Below, piece by piece: positions 5,927-13,472 of a stretch of DNA of 64,000 nucleotides. A program made the translations under genes and the position numbers. The stretch lies in the sequence record PV764603.1; one strand, given 5' to 3'. How positions within the stretch are numbered: the stretch's first letter is position 1; each line of letters opens with the position of its first letter. The notes beneath the pieces were generated by a model that was not told the origin of the DNA, searched no databases, and saw only the letters and a list, made by a program, of their open reading frames with translations.

Positions 5927-6274
5927 ATGGCTTTCACTCCTTCCTCCGGCGTCCTCGGTCAGATCAGGCCCTCAGGCGCAACTGAGACTGTTCTCTACAC
6001 TTGCCCTGCTGATGCACGTGCCTCTGTCAGCATTACCTGCTGCAACACGGATAGCGGCTCTACCACTGTAACGGTCAAGGTGAGGTCAGGTTCCACGTCC
6101 ACTGCTCTTGTGAGCGGTGCTCAGTTGGCACCCGCAGGTGAACAGGGACACTCAATCGACATTCGTGCTCTGATTCTTGGGCCGGGCCAGTCGGTAGCAG
6201 TCACTAGCTTCAGTGGTACTGTAGATTTCAGCGCAATCGGGTACACGGCGCCTTCCAACGTCGTTGCGTTCTAA
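5927..6274 (+). CDS. Small beta-rich virion protein (115 aa)
   Basis: GAGG RBS, beta-rich sequence, located between fibre genes. Confidence 0.6.
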   Translation: MAFTPSSGVLGQIRPSGATETVLYTCPADARASVSITCCNTDSGSTTVTVKVRSGSTSTALVSGAQLAPAGEQGHSIDIRALILGPGQSVAVTSFSGTVDFSAIGYTAPSNVVAF

Positions 6275-6284
6275 GAGGTGACCG

Positions 6285-8570
6285 ATGATTACCCATCAGG
6301 ATACACTGTTCTCCAACATCCTATACGGAAATAATTGGAGTGCAGCTACCTACCAAGCCGCAAATCGGTTCACCATCCAAGGTGACAAGCGAACTTCGTA
6401 TGAGGTAGGTACCCAGGTTCAGATTCTCACGTCCGCCGTAGCTACCATGCAGTACAGCTACGTCAGTGCAGTCACATTCGCATCCAACGTCACTACGGTG
6501 ACAGTCAGCGACGGCCTGTTCGCCTCGGGTCAGAAGATCAATGTTCGTGCGTCGCCGTTTGGCGCCAACAACATGCCCCTCGGCCGACGCTTCAAAGAAA
6601 TCAGCGTGTTCGGTGCGAACGGTCTAACGATCTCGAATGCGAGTCCGAAGTTCACCTTGTTCGTGGAGGGCGTTGGCGCAGGCAAAGTCAACACGTTCAC
6701 TTTCCAGCCGGGCTCTGACGGTATCTCGTTCAAGGTGGGACGTGATGCGATTGGTCTCGATGCCATGCGCATCGACGCCACTTCGACTGCCATCACCAAG
6801 GTGACGTTGTTCTCGCCCCTGACCTTTGGCGCGACGTATACGGGCGCCCTGACTTCGCTGACCGACCTTCTGACGATTGGTCAATACGCACTGACCTATT
6901 CGGCTACGGGTTCTTCGACCGGCAGCAATCGTCTGTATATCTCCGGCCCTAATGGCGGCGAGTTCACCGTTGGTCCTACCAACGATGCTCAGGTATTCCG
7001 TCGTATTCGACTGCGTGCTACTGACGTTGTGGTCGAGAACAATCCCGGCGGTTCCTCGCAAGCAGGCTCGATCTGGCATAGCCTCAACTTCGATCCTGAC
7101 ACCCGTGTTACCAAGGGTCAGAATGGTTCTTGGATGGATTCGGCTTACACTGCGATCAACAACCTTAACAACGCTCAGGGGTATTTCAACCAGTGGGCAT
7201 CGGGCGCCGCACAGGCTCCTGTTGCAGGTTCGACGGGTGTTGTGCAAACCATGCACAGTGCGGGTGGCAACAACTTTAACCCTGTGGCTGGTGCTTCGCT
7301 GGTGCAGACGGCTTATGTCACCAATGGCACCGCACCTGCCCTGTATGTGCGACGCAACGTAGGTGCTTCGGGTTGGTCTGCATGGACTAAGCTGTATACC
7401 CAAGCAGATTTCTCGCTTGGCGATTACGTCAAGATCGCAGGCGGTGATACCATCCAGTCCCCGATCACTGTACGTACTGCCTTGTCCGTTGGCACGACTG
7501 CGGATGCAACGTCCACCCTGAACTTCGGTACCTCGGCCAGTCCCAACGGTCCTGCTGCTACCATTTCTGTTACGGGCGGCGCAGCGACCACGGGTCGTGG
7601 TGCAATGACTATCAACGCGCAGTCCATCGCGCTGCCTGCACTGAACGTCAACGGTACGATGAACGTTTCGGGCGCTGCTTCGATGGCGGGCCCACTGACC
7701 ATCACTACTGGCTCCATACTGCTGGGTAACGGCACGTATGGGGAATCGCGTATTAGCAATACCTTCGACGACTGGTATTTGTATTCCAGTCCTACGGGAC
7801 TTGGCTGGTACAGTATCAGTAAGGGTAGTGCTTTCTCACTGGACAAGAACAGCAAGGCGTTCACGTTCAATGGTGCGGGTACCATCAACGGTCAGACTAC
7901 CATCAATGGTGGTCTGAACGTGGCGAGCGGTAGCGGCATCATCACTTCGGGTAACGTTGTTGGCGCTAACGGCAACTTCTCCAATGACGTGTTTGCCCCG
8001 GGTGCTTTCCGTGGCGCTCGCCTGCACATCTATGCAAACTGTATTGCCTATGGCCAGGGTTTCCTCCCTAGTTGGAACGACTACGGTGATGGCGCAACGG
8101 TCCTGACTAACGCACGCGGCGGTGGTACGGGCGGCTTCAAGTTCCGTCAGATGAACAGTGATGGCGGTGGTCAGGTCTTCCTTGCCTTCATCAACCCGAA
8201 CGGTACCATCGGTTCGGCGTCGGACGAACGCATGAAGGAATTCGGTAAGGTACTCGACCTGTCTGACGCTCTTCGGTTCATCCGTGAGCAGCGAGTCAAG
8301 CACGTCAAGTGGAAGCACACCGGCGAGGAGGATATTGCGTTTGGTGCGCAGAGCATCTTCAAGACCACTAGATTCCTAGCCCACTACGACAAGGGTGCTG
8401 ACTTCTGGCAGCTGTACTACCCGAAGGTAGCTCTGTACCATCACGAAGCTCTCTTCCATATCCTTGAAGTGCAGAACAATCACGAAGCCGACATTCAGAT
8501 TCTGATTCGCAAGAACGAAAATCTGGAAGAGGAAGTGAAGCAGCTGCGCGAACGGTTGGATTCTCTCTAA
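6285..8570 (+). CDS. Tail fibre with C-terminal peptidase S74 intramolecular chaperone
   Basis: Gly/Thr/Asn-rich beta repeats; SDERMKE autocleavage motif, DIAFGAQ, and a C-terminal coiled coil (LEEEVKQLRERL). Confidence 0.88.
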   Translation: MITHQDTLFSNILYGNNWSAATYQAANRFTIQGDKRTSYEVGTQVQILTSAVATMQYSYVSAVTFASNVTTVTVSDGLFASGQKINVRASPFGANNMPLGRRFKEISVFGANGLTISNASPKFTLFVEGVGAGKVNTFTFQPGSDGISFKVGRDAIGLDAMRIDATSTAITKVTLFSPLTFGATYTGALTSLTDLLTIGQYALTYSATGSSTGSNRLYISGPNGGEFTVGPTNDAQVFRRIRLRATDVVVENNPGGSSQAGSIWHSLNFDPDTRVTKGQNGSWMDSAYTAINNLNNAQGYFNQWASGAAQAPVAGSTGVVQTMHSAGGNNFNPVAGASLVQTAYVTNGTAPALYVRRNVGASGWSAWTKLYTQADFSLGDYVKIAGGDTIQSPITVRTALSVGTTADATSTLNFGTSASPNGPAATISVTGGAATTGRGAMTINAQSIALPALNVNGTMNVSGAASMAGPLTITTGSILLGNGTYGESRISNTFDDWYLYSSPTGLGWYSISKGSAFSLDKNSKAFTFNGAGTINGQTTINGGLNVASGSGIITSGNVVGANGNFSNDVFAPGAFRGARLHIYANCIAYGQGFLPSWNDYGDGATVLTNARGGGTGGFKFRQMNSDGGGQVFLAFINPNGTIGSASDERMKEFGKVLDLSDALRFIREQRVKHVKWKHTGEEDIAFGAQSIFKTTRFLAHYDKGADFWQLYYPKVALYHHEALFHILEVQNNHEADIQILIRKNENLEEEVKQLRERLDSL

Positions 8571-8595
8571 GGACATTGGGCACAGGGACGTGCTC
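8569..8595 (+). promoter_or_regulatory. Tandem ANGGA sites with GCAC-AGGGAC-GTGC hairpin (CsrA/RsmA-type site)
   Basis: ACAGGGACGT matches (A/U)CANGGANG(U/A) exactly; a second AAGGAC lies 15 nt upstream. Confidence 0.6.
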
Positions 8596-8612
8596 CTTTT
8601 TAGGTAGAGGCT

Positions 8613-10004
8613 ATGTGGATCACCCCTCAGAATCAAACTCTTGATGACACGTTCGATCCATACTTTCCGGGTACAACTCGGTGGTATGGTTACACCGGCA
8701 TCCTCATCAACAACACGCAAGACACCTACGATCGGTACGCTCCTTTGCAGTATGGCAGGCAAGCTCCATCCACGGCGATCCTTGCGCAGAATCAGGTAGA
8801 CCTGAATCAGATTTACGCAGCCCGAGGTACAGCAGGCTACCTGCAAGGTATCTCTATCCCAAATTGCTACGTGGGCTGCTCTGGCGTTACCATCAACGAT
8901 CTTCTCGCTGCTCGATGCACCATCATCATCAAGAACGACGGTACGTGGCAGCAGTGGTTCTATTCCACCAACTACAAGACGGATAGCCCGGGTGCATATG
9001 CACCTCCTAATCGTGGCATCCCTCGAACCGAAACCAACTTCAGCAACGGACGCATGAACGCCGCCGGTAACTGGGCACAGATTCCGTTCGCTGGTGTGGG
9101 TAACAACTACGAGACTTTCTGCCACGCTCCTTGGGCCCCATACGAAAGCAAGAACCCACCTGATCTAGATTGGGGTACTGCCGATCACTATAATCGGTAT
9201 GATGCTGCACTCATCAACTATATCTGGCACAACTTTAAGGGCCAAGGACAGTTCGGTAGTGCTAGTGATCCATACGTGGTGCAGAACACTACACAGAACC
9301 CCAACGAAGACATTCCTGACGGTCGGGTATACCGCATCGACCGCGACATTCGGTTCACCCTTGGCTTGACTGCACAGGGACGCAACAACGTTCGTTGGAA
9401 CTACGACGACAACGGCGCTCTGTCATGGTACAACCGAGCCAACTTTTCGGTGTACATTCAGACACCCGGTGGTGGTCAGCGTGTAGGTGCCACGTGCTTG
9501 ATGGCCAATGAGATTCGATGGAACGCATGGAATTGGACGGGTGGTAGCGTCGGCGGCGGTGGTGGCGGTGGTGGCGGTGGTTGCGTTGCTGCTACCAGCT
9601 ATGTTGACTTCCAAAAGACCGCAGGCACTGTTGAGGCAGGCGACTACCTCATGGGTATGACGGATGATCTGCAATTTATGGAGCTACACGTCCTGAGTGT
9701 GCGTCGTCAAGTGCAACCGTGTGTCCGACTCTACTCAAAGAGTGGCGTCACCCTTGTGTGCTCAAAGTCCACGCCGCTGACCCTACAGAACGGAGATTGC
9801 GTGCTGGCAGGCGAAGCACGAGCAGGTATCAAGCTTCCGGTACGATTCTTCGCGGCTGATCCTGAGTGGGAAACCATCGTCAAGATCGAGGAGGTTGGCA
9901 ACCGGGAAGTGATGCTCATCAACTGCGGTGGACAGAGCTATGCTGCCGGTGAGTTGCCGGGCCGCTATATCTACACCCACAACAACAACCAGCAGAAGAT
10001 GTGA
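8613..10004 (+). CDS. Fibre-tip adhesin (gp38-like position) with poly-Gly linker and C-terminal Hint (intein-like) domain
   Basis: Directly follows the S74 fibre; 10 Gly then CVAATSYV (Cys324), VRLYSKSGVTLVCS, WETIVKIEEVG.REVMLINCGGQSYAAG and IYTHN. Confidence 0.75.
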   Translation: MWITPQNQTLDDTFDPYFPGTTRWYGYTGILINNTQDTYDRYAPLQYGRQAPSTAILAQNQVDLNQIYAARGTAGYLQGISIPNCYVGCSGVTINDLLAARCTIIIKNDGTWQQWFYSTNYKTDSPGAYAPPNRGIPRTETNFSNGRMNAAGNWAQIPFAGVGNNYETFCHAPWAPYESKNPPDLDWGTADHYNRYDAALINYIWHNFKGQGQFGSASDPYVVQNTTQNPNEDIPDGRVYRIDRDIRFTLGLTAQGRNNVRWNYDDNGALSWYNRANFSVYIQTPGGGQRVGATCLMANEIRWNAWNWTGGSVGGGGGGGGGGCVAATSYVDFQKTAGTVEAGDYLMGMTDDLQFMELHVLSVRRQVQPCVRLYSKSGVTLVCSKSTPLTLQNGDCVLAGEARAGIKLPVRFFAADPEWETIVKIEEVGNREVMLINCGGQSYAAGELPGRYIYTHNNNQQKM

Positions 10005-10423
10005 TGATTGGTTCTGACCAACTCTCAGAAGTAGGTGTACCTGTCGGAGAGCTCTCCATTGGGAGGACTCTCGACGTATATGCGGTGGACGATCTACACT
10101 CGGTCATCCGCCTGAAAGGAACCGTCTCAAATCGGGTCCTGCGCAGTGCAGAAGTAGTAACCATCACAACTGCCTCCGGCGCTTCCGTTGTGGTGGCTGC
10201 CCAAAGTCGCCTCCCTGTCTATAGCGGACAGACAGCGCTGGCTAAGAATGTTGGTGCCAACATGATTGCTGTGATGGCCCCTAATGGCGCTTTTCGGTGG
10301 GAGCGGGTTGCCACCATCGAGGCTGGTACTGAGGCCGTAGTGGACCTCAAGTGTGAAGGCTACATAGTAGCCGGTAACGATCCTAAAACCGGGCTAATCT
10401 TGGTGTCTGGATCGCTGCCGTGA
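10004..10423 (+). CDS. Stand-alone degenerate Hint-like protein (139 aa)
   Basis: TGATG overlap with the adhesin; VGELSIG, VVTITTASGASVVV and WERVATIEAGTEAVVDLKCEGYIVAG align by eye with the upstream Hint, but Cys1 and HN are absent. Confidence 0.55.
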   Translation: MIGSDQLSEVGVPVGELSIGRTLDVYAVDDLHSVIRLKGTVSNRVLRSAEVVTITTASGASVVVAAQSRLPVYSGQTALAKNVGANMIAVMAPNGAFRWERVATIEAGTEAVVDLKCEGYIVAGNDPKTGLILVSGSLP

Positions 10424-10428
10424 CAGTC

Positions 10429-10466
10429 AATTTTACGTAAGGACATAAGGCTACGGATAGCAGCCT
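10429..10466 (+). promoter_or_regulatory. AATTTTA motif followed by two ANGGAY sites (AAGGAC; GCT-ACGGAT-AGC hairpin)
   Basis: Seen directly in the leader of ORF 10503. Confidence 0.5.
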
Positions 10467-10502
10467 CACATAAAGACACTTCCCAACAAATAAGGAACGA
10501 TC

Positions 10503-11180
10503 ATGCAACTCCAGGTTCTTCTCTCCTCTGTCGAAGCTCTCAAGTACGTTGCCGGCCTGCGGCTGCCTGCTGTCAAGGCGTTCAAGGTCAGTTCATACCT
10601 GCAACGTGCTCAGGTCCATATTGACGCATGGCAGGCAACTGGCCGGACTCTGGCCCAGCGCCACTACGGCGAAGACCAGCAGCCGCTGTCTCCCGAAGAC
10701 GCCGTACAGTTCAAGGCAGCCACTGACGAAGTGCTTGCTTCGGACGTCGAAGTCGATACCGTCAAGCTCCTGAGCTACCCGGCAGACTTCAAGGAGGAAA
10801 GTTTCATCCCCCTGAATATGGCCATCCTGTCTGAGCACTTTGTTGACGTTACCAAGCCCGAAGCTACTGGCGTCACCAAGATTAGTCGGGGTAAGCTGAT
10901 TGGCGCTTACATGTCTCTTCAACAGTTGGGTCAGCAGGAACTGCCGAAGGCTGTTGGTGAGAATCTGCTGTTCAACCTGATGACGGTCCGAGACCTACTG
11001 AATTCGTTCTCGGAGCGCGACGTTGAACTGACTAAGCAGGGCGATGCGAAGGCTCTGGAGGAATATCGTTCCGAGGAAGTGGAGGTCAACTTCTATCCCA
11101 TCAACATCAATGCGTTTGGCGATGTTGAAGTGGCTCCGGCACTTCTCGTAGATGCCGCGTGGCTCATCACTGAGGAATGA
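10503..11180 (+). CDS. Tandem-duplicated DUF1617-like helical protein (possible fibre assembly chaperone)
   Basis: Two similar halves: L..L...LP...A..L...L...... ..L...DVEV / EEVEV...I...F.D....P..L. Confidence 0.5.
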   Translation: MQLQVLLSSVEALKYVAGLRLPAVKAFKVSSYLQRAQVHIDAWQATGRTLAQRHYGEDQQPLSPEDAVQFKAATDEVLASDVEVDTVKLLSYPADFKEESFIPLNMAILSEHFVDVTKPEATGVTKISRGKLIGAYMSLQQLGQQELPKAVGENLLFNLMTVRDLLNSFSERDVELTKQGDAKALEEYRSEEVEVNFYPININAFGDVEVAPALLVDAAWLITEE

Positions 11181-11183
11181 TTC

Positions 11184-11729
11184 ATGGCTGAGTTTGACAT
11201 TGCCTATAGGCAGCAGAACATCGAGTCGGATTTGATTGATGATCCTACTGATCCTGGGGCTGTGACAAACTATGGTTGGAACCTTGGCTCCCTCCGCTTG
11301 GTGGGAGTCGAGGCCGACTACGAATTCGTCAAGAGTATGACGGCGGCAACTGCCAAGGAATTATACCGTCAGTATTTCTGGCATCCACTTTGGACCGAAC
11401 TCAAATGTCAGCAGGCGGCAAACAAGCTGTTTACCCTCGCTGTGACAACGTGCGCACCCAACAATTTCAACTTGGCCACTCGCTGTTTGCAGAGGGCCTT
11501 GTGGGCATCGGGCGCTTACGTGCATGAGGATGGAAAGCTTACAGAGGATGTAATAAGCGCAGCTAACGCCGTTGAGTGTTCGGCCCTAAGCTCTGCCATG
11601 CGTAGTGAAATGGCTTCCTACTACAGGACGCTTAACGCGGAGTATGAACTGAGGGTCAAGTACAAGCTGCCTGTAGTGGTCCCCGTGAATCGTTACATTC
11701 GCGTGTGGCTTCACAACTCCTATCGCTGA
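11184..11729 (+). CDS. Divergent GH108 (TtsA-like) muramidase with PG_binding_3-like C-terminus
   Basis: ESDLIDDPTDPGAVTNYGW vs canonical EGGY.NDP.DPGG.TNYGI; LQRAL...EDGKL...I.AAN. Confidence 0.75.
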   Translation: MAEFDIAYRQQNIESDLIDDPTDPGAVTNYGWNLGSLRLVGVEADYEFVKSMTAATAKELYRQYFWHPLWTELKCQQAANKLFTLAVTTCAPNNFNLATRCLQRALWASGAYVHEDGKLTEDVISAANAVECSALSSAMRSEMASYYRTLNAEYELRVKYKLPVVVPVNRYIRVWLHNSYR

Positions 11730-11739
11730 AGAGGATGGC

Positions 11740-12465
11740 ATGACCATGAGCACGGAAACCGTTCTGATCGGTCTTGGCTGTCTACCTGATAACGCTCAAG
11801 CCCTTGAGGGGGCGTGCATTCGGTACGGCATCGAGACTACGTGGCACAAGTCCATTTTCATCGGACAGATCGCTGTAGAAACAGGTGGCTTCCGTGCCAC
11901 CCGCGAAAGCATGAATTACAGCGTTGAAGGTCTTATCAATGGTTTTGGCCGTCACCGTATCAGTGTGGCGGACGCTCAGAAATACGGGCGTATTGATAAG
12001 GTCGTGAACGGCAAGAAAACTGTTATCCGAGCAGCTAACCAAGTAGCCATCGCCAACATCCTGTACGGCGGTGAGTGGGGACGCAAGAATTTGGGTAATA
12101 CCGAGTTGAACGACGGATGGAATTTCAGGGGCGGCGGTGACAAGCAATTGACTGGCCGCGCTAATTGGACCAACTACAGCATGGACACCTATGGTGACTT
12201 GCGTGTGCTGGAGAATCCTACTCTGATCGAACTCTATCCCGACAAGAGCTACACTGCTGGTTGGTTCTGGCAACGCAACAAGCTGGGTGACATTGCTTCG
12301 CAATATGTGCTCCCTGATGATCCCAAATCTCCGGAGTACGATTCCATCCTGCGTTCTACTGTTACGGTAGTTACCAAGAAGGTCAACGGCGGTGACAAGG
12401 GTTTGGAGGATCGCATCATGTGGACGAAAAAGGCCCTGCAAGGCTTCAATCAACTCGTACTGTGA
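11740..12465 (+). CDS. GH19 endolysin (chitinase-like lysozyme)
   Basis: FIGQIAVETGGF....ESMNYS, NLGNTELNDGWNFRGGGDKQLTGRANW, AGWFW, VTKKVNGGDKGLEDR. Confidence 0.92.
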   Translation: MTMSTETVLIGLGCLPDNAQALEGACIRYGIETTWHKSIFIGQIAVETGGFRATRESMNYSVEGLINGFGRHRISVADAQKYGRIDKVVNGKKTVIRAANQVAIANILYGGEWGRKNLGNTELNDGWNFRGGGDKQLTGRANWTNYSMDTYGDLRVLENPTLIELYPDKSYTAGWFWQRNKLGDIASQYVLPDDPKSPEYDSILRSTVTVVTKKVNGGDKGLEDRIMWTKKALQGFNQLVL

Positions 12466-12471
12466 CTAACG

Positions 12472-12500
12472 TGCTGGGAACATTAGTTCCCAGCATTCTT
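12472..12500 (+). terminator. Probable intrinsic terminator
   Basis: TGCTGGGAA-CATTAG-TTCCCAGCA followed by TTCTT, after the endolysin. Confidence 0.6.
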
Positions 12501-12903: not shown

Positions 12904-13245
12904 ATGCCCTTGTGGTTGACTGCATGGTTTGCGAAAATGTGGGCCAAGTGCTCGCAGTATGTCATTGCCGCTGGCTCCATATTGGCGGCAATTGCTGGTA
13001 TCTTCCTGTACGGTCGCTTCAAGGGTAAGTCCGCCGCCGATGCAAAGCATGCGGAGCAGGATGCGAAACGAATTGAGGCTGAAACCAAGATCGTTGAGAA
13101 GATCGACCAAGCTCACGAATCTACCCGTGAGCAGGTCGAGGAAAAAATCGAGAAAATCCCTGCTCCAACTACGGATCCTAACGAGACAGTTAGGGTGGGG
13201 GATGCACCTAAAGATTCGGCCGCAGGCAAATTGAGGGGCTGGTAA
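12904..13245 (+). CDS. Inner-membrane spanin (Rz-like)
   Basis: N-terminal TM (YVIAAGSILAAIAGIFLYG) followed by a charged coiled coil; next to a lipoprotein. Confidence 0.8.
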   Translation: MPLWLTAWFAKMWAKCSQYVIAAGSILAAIAGIFLYGRFKGKSAADAKHAEQDAKRIEAETKIVEKIDQAHESTREQVEEKIEKIPAPTTDPNETVRVGDAPKDSAAGKLRGW

Positions 13246-13472
13246 TGAAAACTCTCCTGATTATCGCCATCGCCTTACTTGCAGGCTGCGCAACTACTCC
13301 ACAAGTGGTGGCTCAAACCGACATTTGCGCTGGCTGGAAGGCCATCAAGGTCAACGAAAACGACGAATTCACGGATGGAACTGCCAAGCAGATTCTAGCG
13401 CACAATTGTCAAGGCGCAGCCTTGAAGTGCTGGGCCTATCCGAGGAATGATCCCCAAATTTGTGAACGCTAA
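13245..13472 (+). CDS. Outer-membrane spanin lipoprotein (Rz1-like)
   Basis: MKTLLIIAIALLAGC lipobox; additional Cys residues; TAATG overlap with the i-spanin. Confidence 0.82.
   Translation: MKTLLIIAIALLAGCATTPQVVAQTDICAGWKAIKVNENDEFTDGTAKQILAHNCQGAALKCWAYPRNDPQICER

Follow-up and report, generated by a model that had tools for sequence, protein, structure and literature searches.

A predicted Hint-fold module at the C-terminus of a probable tail-fibre-associated protein of Xanthomonas phage PhiXhv-16: a likely self-removing pro-domain resembling bacterial intein-like domains

We analyzed a stretch of 64,000 nucleotides from sequence record PV764603.1 (referred to here as the window) and focus on one gene of its tail-fibre/baseplate block, XYR93579.1, which is annotated as hypothetical and encodes a 463-residue protein ending in what is predicted to be a Hint domain. 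Bases 6000-12500 of the window match Xanthomonas phage PhiXhv-16 (PV764603.1), a 229-kb jumbo myovirus whose host is X. hortorum pv. vitians, at 100% identity, and phages PhiXhv-12, PhiXhv-15, Ep026 and Ep032 at 97-99.7%. Upstream of the gene, in order and on the same (+) strand, lie genes for a baseplate protein, a tail protein, a 115-residue fibre-like protein and a 761-residue fibre. The features of the gene itself, with the evidence by which each was assigned, are as follows.

8613-10004, + strand: gene XYR93579.1, 463 residues, tail-fibre/baseplate block of PhiXhv-16
8613-9539, + strand: N-terminal part (residues 1-309), presumed receptor-binding or fibre-associated, without a known fold relative
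9540-9581, + strand: Gly-rich linker, GGSV followed by ten Gly (residues 310-323); Gly323 is position -1 of the predicted scissile bond
9582-9983, + strand: predicted Hint-fold module, Cys324 to Asn457, 134 residues (AlphaFold2, Foldseek, profile searches of the PDB)
9582-9584, + strand: Cys324, the putative position-1 nucleophile (conservation in the family)
9762-9776, + strand: variant of block B, S384-K-S-T387-P388 (alignments to solved inteins)
9978-9983, + strand: His456-Asn457, the end of block G (conservation in the family)
9984-10001, + strand: tail NNQQKM of six residues, the last but one being Lys462 (9996-9998) (conservation of Lys in short tails)

An initial annotation, made from the letters of the DNA, had proposed that this protein is a fibre-tip adhesin with a self-cleaving Hint domain, and the residues on which it relied are all present. 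The ten Gly are residues 314-323 (9552-9581), with GGSV just before them; Cys324 begins the sequence CVAATSYV; and T455-H456-N457 is followed only by NNQQKM and a stop codon (10002-10004), so that the residue at position +1 is Asn458 and not Cys, Ser or Thr. Its suggestion that the block B His has been replaced is likewise borne out: the sequence C-S-K-S-T-P occupies residues 383-388, and in two independent hidden Markov model (HMM) alignments, to the gp41-1 and PhoCDC21-1 inteins, S384 falls on the block B Thr and T387 on the block B His. The codons of the Gly run form an imperfect (GGY)10 repeat, in which slippage could alter the length. As for the N-terminal part, searches of Pfam, NCBIfam and the PDB with residues 1-309 returned no relative, and residues 10-120 match PHROG 11610 (function unassigned) and a piece of a protein from Xanthomonas phage Rb1. 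The protein is probably tail-fibre-associated and receptor-binding; the label 'adhesin' was drawn from gene order alone.

The C-terminal 140 residues are predicted with high confidence to adopt the Hint fold. An AlphaFold2 model of residues 305-463, built from a 49-sequence alignment, had a predicted local distance difference test score (pLDDT) of 88.9 and a predicted template-modelling (TM) score of 0.83, and was uncertain only in the Gly linker and in the last three residues, where pLDDT fell below 50. When this model was compared with the PDB using Foldseek, 57 matches were obtained at E <= 0.001, the best 50 of which (probability 1.00, TM 0.6-0.8, or 0.65-0.82 relative to the target) were all inteins, bacterial intein-like (BIL) domains (2lwy, 6y75/6tmm) or the hedgehog autoprocessing domain (1at0). 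The BIL domain of Clostridium thermocellum (2lwy) was match 6, at 14% identity. Among predicted viral structures (BFVD) the best matches were uncharacterized phage proteins with the same module, and further matches included phage proteins named 'Hint' and intein-bearing terminases. The Hint assignment of the initial annotation is thus supported by structure prediction.

At the level of sequence a relationship to known Hint members is detectable, but weak. A phmmer search of all PDB sequences with the last 141 residues gave the gp41-1 intein as its sole match (E 0.03), and a profile of 49 relatives ranked the PhoCDC21-1 intein first. A domain-only profile (A8), made from 27 phage and viral-contig modules, had inteins as all of its top seven PDB matches: 6rpq (E 7.7e-4), gp41-1 (5e-3), and then the KlbA, DnaE and DnaB inteins. 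A phmmer search of the PDB with the whole protein was set aside, its matches being mostly artificial Gly-Ser linkers; such searches are informative only with the trimmed domain and with profiles. PHROGs returned no Hint match for the module, and just one of 126 relatives reached a Pfam Hint model (Intein_splicing 1.3e-5, PT-HINT 4.1e-5).

The same layout recurs far above chance. Word-based searches recovered it from 8 + 13 homologues, whose N-terminal parts are of at least three unrelated kinds. When 1.84 billion cluster representatives were searched exhaustively for the 141-residue module, 746 were returned at E <= 0.001, 175 of them at E <= 1e-10, in proteins of 92-2819 residues. These represent clusters at 50% identity, of which the family has at least 746. 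The counts that follow come from 166 re-aligned domain instances in the best 150 of the 746 representatives. The module ends within 15 residues of the protein C-terminus in about 147 of 163 genuine modules and is preceded by a linker with a median of six Gly among 12 residues, residue -1 being Gly in 79 of 160. Position 1 is Cys (130 of 160) or Ser (27). Block B runs from Ser (158/167) over two residues x-x to the intein His position, held by Thr in 142 instances, Ala in 23 and His in one, with Pro (165/167) next to it, giving the pattern S-x-x-T-P; residues vary at the position corresponding to the block F Asp of gp41-1. The terminus reads (T/H)-H-N, with His in 163 of 167 and Asn in 160 of 167. 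Thirty-two IMG/VR viral contigs carry the full signature, namely at least five Gly, Cys-Val, C-S-x-(S/T)-(T/A)-P, H-N and a tail ending K-x.

What follows the terminal Asn is equally distinctive. Residue +1 is Ala, Pro (22 members), Val, Ile, Lys or another residue; it is never Cys, and is Ser or Thr in only 14 of 158, which excludes canonical splicing. The tail is 3-8 residues long in 127 of 158 modules. Lys is present in 150 of 151 short tails and is the penultimate residue of the protein in 117 of these, independent of tail length, most commonly in the ending K-P; it lies within 12 residues of the terminal Asn in 156 of 159 modules, as compared with a Lys share of 2.9% inside the domains themselves. 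In one viral sub-lineage tails of 12 residues are conserved and end K-K or K-N. Where any residues follow the module its last residue is Asn (159/159), and in the four modules that end their protein it is Asp or Ser (4/4). Taken together, the family is a large Hint subfamily with a distinctive active-site pattern that goes undetected by Pfam and NCBIfam. Hundreds of tail proteins now called 'hypothetical' could be annotated on this basis.

Tandem Hint-Hint C-termini were observed in five metagenomic relatives (P0040, P0048, P0077, P0152 and P0071), the last of which has two complete Hint modules. In these proteins the first module ends H-H-N, a five-residue linker K-K-x-G-F/Y follows, and then comes Cys1 of the second module; with this module the protein ends, and its last residues are H-H-D or H-H-S rather than H-N.

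The module is joined to a wide range of N-terminal parts. Pfam scans of 126 relatives named Phage-tail_3 in seven, GpJ FNIII-A in four, Rcc01698_C in three, Gp53-like_C in two, and Phage_Tail_Tip and Mtd_N in one each; the type IV pilin N_methyl domain was found in three, PilS in two, and PKD, cadherin and Big domains in several. Among cultured phages the module is present in XacN1, RTH11, LucasX and Stenotrophomonas phage DLP_6. The module of XacN1 ORF231 (ORF, open reading frame) is 50% identical to that of the 463-residue protein and its N-terminal part is different; on XacN1-like contigs the module gene is the last in a run of five large structural genes. In DLP_6 (L008, KU682439.2, 157096-162570) the module ends an 1824-residue protein annotated as 'VlrC protein', and a tblastn search of that genome reported a second, weaker place. 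Ten relatives that we looked up in their clusters came from metagenomic sources only and were named 'hypothetical protein', with one 'predicted phage tail protein'. One metagenomic contig (L041) encodes a type-IV-pilin-like protein (P0040, 8001-10643; N_methyl plus PilS) with two Hint modules, together with a large helicase and a 2OG-Fe oxygenase, and has no evident phage genes, which indicates that the module is not confined to phage tails. Judged by its sequence contexts, the module is a conserved cassette that caps the host-recognition proteins of phages and, less often, adhesins of the pilus or surface type. In the literature that we searched, no phage fibre or receptor-binding protein is described as carrying a Hint or BIL module; the PhiXhv paper does not mention the module, nor do the searched sections of the XacN1 paper and of a jumbo-phage review, and the papers found on these phages contain no relevant proteomics.

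Two neighbouring genes bear on how the module might be used.

6285-8570, + strand: 761-residue fibre whose C-terminal approx. 115 residues (from 8220) are S74-like, with sub-threshold scores
10004-10423, + strand: predicted degenerate Hint paralogue, 139 residues (family HMM, hhalign, synteny)

The initial annotation took the upstream gene to be an S74 fibre. In its favor, the S-D-x-x-x-K site of the 761-residue protein (here S-D-E-R-M-K) has Ser, Asp and Lys invariant in three relatives and is followed by a helical/coiled-coil tail (8220-8567), and the Pfam match to Peptidase_S74 (PF13884) begins at this site; the match itself, however, falls below the cut-off (E 0.063, 14 bits against 22). 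A profile of the fibre matched an L-shaped tail fibre chain in the PDB (E 0.17). It is plausible that the fibre C-terminus is a divergent intramolecular chaperone of the S74 type. The 463-residue protein itself gave no match to S74, and it may be that a different self-cleaving C-terminal module serves each of the two adjacent fibre genes.

The start codon of the downstream 139-residue ORF lies within the stop codon of XYR93579.1 (TGATG overlap). This ORF matched the module by BLASTP (E 0.002) and by hhalign (86%, E 4.7e-6, 114 columns), and the family HMM scored it at 46.7 bits and its counterparts in two related contigs at 35.2 and 26.6, whereas none of 900 shuffles scored above 7.2. Cys1, S-x-x-T-P and H-N are all missing from this ORF. 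The counterparts, at 30-41% identity, occupy the same coupled position in two metagenomic relatives (L004, 9374-9793, and L006, 7425-7844); none was found in the XacN1 lineage or in the IMG/VR loci examined, a word-based homologue search returned only the ORF itself, and a single-sequence AlphaFold2 model of it had a pLDDT of 32.7. By these comparisons the ORF is a predicted Hint paralogue, catalytically dead and translationally coupled to the 463-residue gene. It probably works with the 463-residue protein in assembly, its gene sitting where fibre assembly factors are usually encoded. The pairing of a live and a dead Hint gene poses a small puzzle about the recruitment of autoprocessing domains as assembly factors.

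There is precedent for Hint domains that cleave rather than splice. A-type BIL domains were reportedly described by Amitai and colleagues in 2003, and of the known systems these are what the module most resembles. Both have the Hint fold, Cys or Ser at position 1 and a C-terminal His-Asn without a +1 nucleophile, and both occur in variable surface or secreted proteins as opposed to conserved enzymes. Cleavage at the N- and C-terminal junctions is the main outcome reported for BIL domains (PMC7664689) and would be expected of the module. The module differs in having S-x-x-T-P where BIL domains have the block B T-x-x-H, in being terminal rather than internal, in its tail of 3-8 residues with a near-invariant Lys, and in its preceding poly-Gly and association with phage tail proteins. 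Pfam, NCBIfam and PHROGs, as searched, contained no BIL profile, and the likeness to 2lwy is one of fold only. BIL2 of the Tetrahymena BUBL polyubiquitin-like locus (6y75, 6tmm) is likewise a Hint domain that follows a Gly-ended N-extein. In contrast to the module, however, it is eukaryotic and regulated by zinc, is flanked on both sides by ubiquitin-like domains and has retained the block B His (H69). In the module the possible acceptor Lys lies in the short tail, and the reaction is hypothetical.

Several other assignments were considered and rejected. Class 1 mini-inteins (gp41-1, 6qaz/6riz; NpuDnaB, 4o1r; PhoCDC21-1, 6rpq) are the best matches and share Cys1 and the His-Asn terminus, but the module has no +1 nucleophile (Asn458), no real C-extein, no block B His (S384-x-x-T387) and no conserved host-protein site, and it is terminal. 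A class 3 intein, which lacks a position-1 nucleophile and has a Trp-Cys-Thr triad with a block F Cys, does not fit either: Cys1 is present, and the residue aligned to Asp107 of gp41-1, where the engineered class 3 Cys of 6riz lies, is Leu435 and is variable family-wide. The hedgehog Hog domain and PT-HINT resemble the module in using the Hint fold for release and not for splicing. Hog has a sterol-recognition region and no terminal His-Asn; the module, by contrast, ends in His-Asn and is followed by no more than six residues. In PT-HINT the Hint part stands ahead of a toxin domain, a feature that is absent here. An annotation artefact or gene fusion was dismissed in view of the ORF being continuous in five phages and in distant relatives.

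A plausible scenario, and the one we favor as moderately probable, is that the last 140 residues are a BIL-like Hint pro-domain that removes itself from the C-terminus of a tail-fibre-associated protein. After folding, Cys324 would attack the carbonyl of Gly323 in an N-S acyl shift, with the flexible Gly10 linker keeping the scissile Gly323|Cys324 bond accessible, and the resulting thioester would be resolved, most simply by hydrolysis. Asn457 would cyclize with the help of His456, cutting off the hexapeptide tail. The Hint domain would be lost from the mature protein, which would be about 34 kDa in size with a poly-Gly C-terminus. What the analysis shows are the sequence features, the predicted fold, the conservation across the family and the genomic contexts; the chemical steps and the biological role are inferred. 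Our reasoning is that: (i) the conserved junction residues, together with a place at the protein end and the absence of a nucleophile at +1, match the cleavage behaviour of BIL domains; (ii) the retention of Asn in modules with a tail, and of Asp or Ser in those without one, is as expected if Asn serves to cut what follows; and (iii) the flexible linker leaves the Hint domain tethered rather than packed, which fits a removable pro-domain better than a folding nucleus of the S74 type. The initial annotation offered an S74-like chaperone role for the Hint module as its alternative, and this is weakened by the Gly/Ser linker that separates the module from the N-terminal part. The peptidase S74 chaperones of endosialidase and T5 pb1 are similar in being C-terminal domains of phage fibres and spikes expected to cut themselves off. 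They differ in that S74 uses a Ser-Lys dyad in a trimeric helical domain, unrelated to Hint in fold and chemistry, and abuts the fibre directly instead of following a flexible Gly linker.

A number of observations weigh against self-removal as we have drawn it. Thr stands here in place of the block B His, which no other catalytic residue of inteins surpasses in conservation; with the block F Asp position also variable, the catalytic machinery departs from the canonical one and is assumed to be competent. The missing His is a genuine reservation, although such a loss is compensated in the Tko CDC21-1 intein. Interplay between extein and intein that compensates for this His is also the subject of a study known to us as it is cited in PMC8616854 (reference 67). 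Neither Pfam nor NCBIfam gave a Hint match for the module of the 463-residue protein even at E 10 or 1. Simple hydrolysis, moreover, leaves the Lys-bearing tail and the strict coupling of Asn to it unexplained, since a discarded tail would call for neither Asn nor Lys to be retained. Finally, since the flexible linker disfavors a tight chaperone role, the benefit of having a removable domain is left without an explanation.

It is in accounting for the tail that another scenario, possible though on balance unlikely, has its appeal. Here the Gly323 thioester would be attacked by the epsilon-amine of Lys462 and the cyclization of Asn457 would then free the Hint domain, so that the hexapeptide would be kept through a Gly-(epsilon)Lys bond as a branched, exopeptidase-resistant C-terminus; in a variant, which has been proposed for A-type BIL domains, the tail would be released first and attack through its free alpha-amine. 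Both Hint junctions meet at the active site, which makes the tail Lys an obvious internal acceptor. Its near-invariance, its penultimate place at tail lengths of 3-8 and its rarity within the domains are consistent with such a role, as are the K-K or K-N endings of the conserved 12-residue tails, and the strict coupling of Asn to the tail suggests that the tail matters and is not discarded. The frequent Pro at +1, a poor alpha-amine nucleophile, favors the side chain. Precedent comes from Tetrahymena BIL2, which is reported to join a Lys epsilon-amine to a C-terminus by an isopeptide bond (PMC8616854) and is among our fold matches (6y75). BIL domains without a +1 nucleophile predominantly give N- and C-cleaved products, with ligation possible (PMC7664689, its references 11 and 16). 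The statement in the initial annotation that the domain cannot splice was in this respect too strong: canonical splicing is excluded, but BIL domains of this kind can ligate and a ciliate BIL domain makes a Lys isopeptide. That annotation had also passed over the near-invariant tail Lys, the Asn-tail coupling, the extent of the family and its link with phage receptor-binding proteins, and the dead paralogue next door. Against lysine transfer, the case is built from conservation, the model positions the tail with little confidence, and the Lys may rather be catalytic (a substitute for the block B His) or a structural anchor; phage proteins, moreover, are not known to yield a product of this kind. 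We are slightly more doubtful still of the broader proposition that the family as a whole might carry out a previously undescribed, lysine-directed variant of splicing, in which the C-terminal Gly of a phage receptor-binding protein or pilus adhesin is passed to the epsilon-amine of the tail Lys and the domain excises itself by Asn cyclization, leaving a branched, isopeptide-capped C-terminus. If this were true, the adhesin might in some contexts be joined covalently to a partner through its activated end instead, and the dead Hint paralogue would have arisen from this fold as a partner dedicated to assembly.

The remaining scenarios rank below lysine transfer. That the module is a retained, non-catalytic knob of Hint fold, a distal structural or binding domain on the virion, would agree with the lack of conservation at the block B His and the block F Asp-aligned position and with the existence of dead Hint domains, one of them encoded next door. 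We consider it improbable, as, unless chemistry takes place, it is difficult to account for the Cys/Ser alternation, the nearly invariant His-Asn, the coupling of Asn to a tail and the Lys in that tail, and it is exactly the residues of the catalytic pattern that the dead paralogue has lost; unlike a host-specific tip, moreover, the module is 50% identical across phages with unrelated N-terminal parts. A little more improbable again is the hedgehog-like transfer that the initial annotation had raised, in which the Gly323 acyl group would pass to an external nucleophile (a small molecule, a further subunit, or a Lys on a partner protein in the fibre or baseplate) and fix the adhesin covalently to the virion. 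The thioester chemistry would be that of hedgehog, whose domain (1at0) is among the fold matches, the Gly10 tether would let the activated end reach a partner, and the gene follows the fibre gene; yet no sterol-recognition or other adaptor region follows the Hint core, the conserved Asn and tail would be needless for such a reaction and are both absent from hedgehog, and the family sits on very different proteins with no common acceptor evident. That the gene has taken up a mobile Hint element, such as a true (mini-)intein, is for practical purposes excluded. Inteins are indeed the best matches in sequence and fold, but a +1 Cys, Ser or Thr is missing here and almost everywhere in the family, the 'C-extein' would be 3-8 residues long, there is no homing endonuclease, and the module stands at the end of the protein and not in a conserved site of an essential enzyme. 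The module is neither a mobile intein nor a determinant of specificity, and we return to the self-removing pro-domain as the favored explanation.

Phage receptor-binding proteins are determinants of host recognition, and their maturation matters for understanding and describing biocontrol phages; PhiXhv-12, a near-identical sister of PhiXhv-16, is a component of a lettuce leaf-spot cocktail. To our knowledge, the S74 chaperone-protease is the only widely recognized self-cleaving C-terminal module of phage fibres. If the predicted cleavage takes place, the Hint-fold module would add a second one, chemically unrelated to it. For intein biochemistry, the family offers a natural set of Hint domains without the block B His and with a conserved tail Lys coupled to the terminal Asn, and it raises a concrete question, namely whether the thioester goes to water or to Lys.

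The 463-residue gene is followed on the + strand by the 139-residue ORF, a 225-residue ORF, two glycoside-hydrolase endolysins, spanins and a 794-residue tailspike-like protein. In a phage relative with 57% identity (L006) the endolysin genes are followed by a 279-residue gene (9881-10720) with a weak Pfam ADPrib_exo_Tox match, which has no counterpart at the corresponding place in the window. The lysis genes of the window lie directly downstream of the fibre module: a protein with GH108 and PG_binding_3 domains (11184-11729) and a PHROG 181 endolysin (11740-12465) are adjacent on the + strand, and Rz-like spanins are encoded 3' of both, at 12904-13472.

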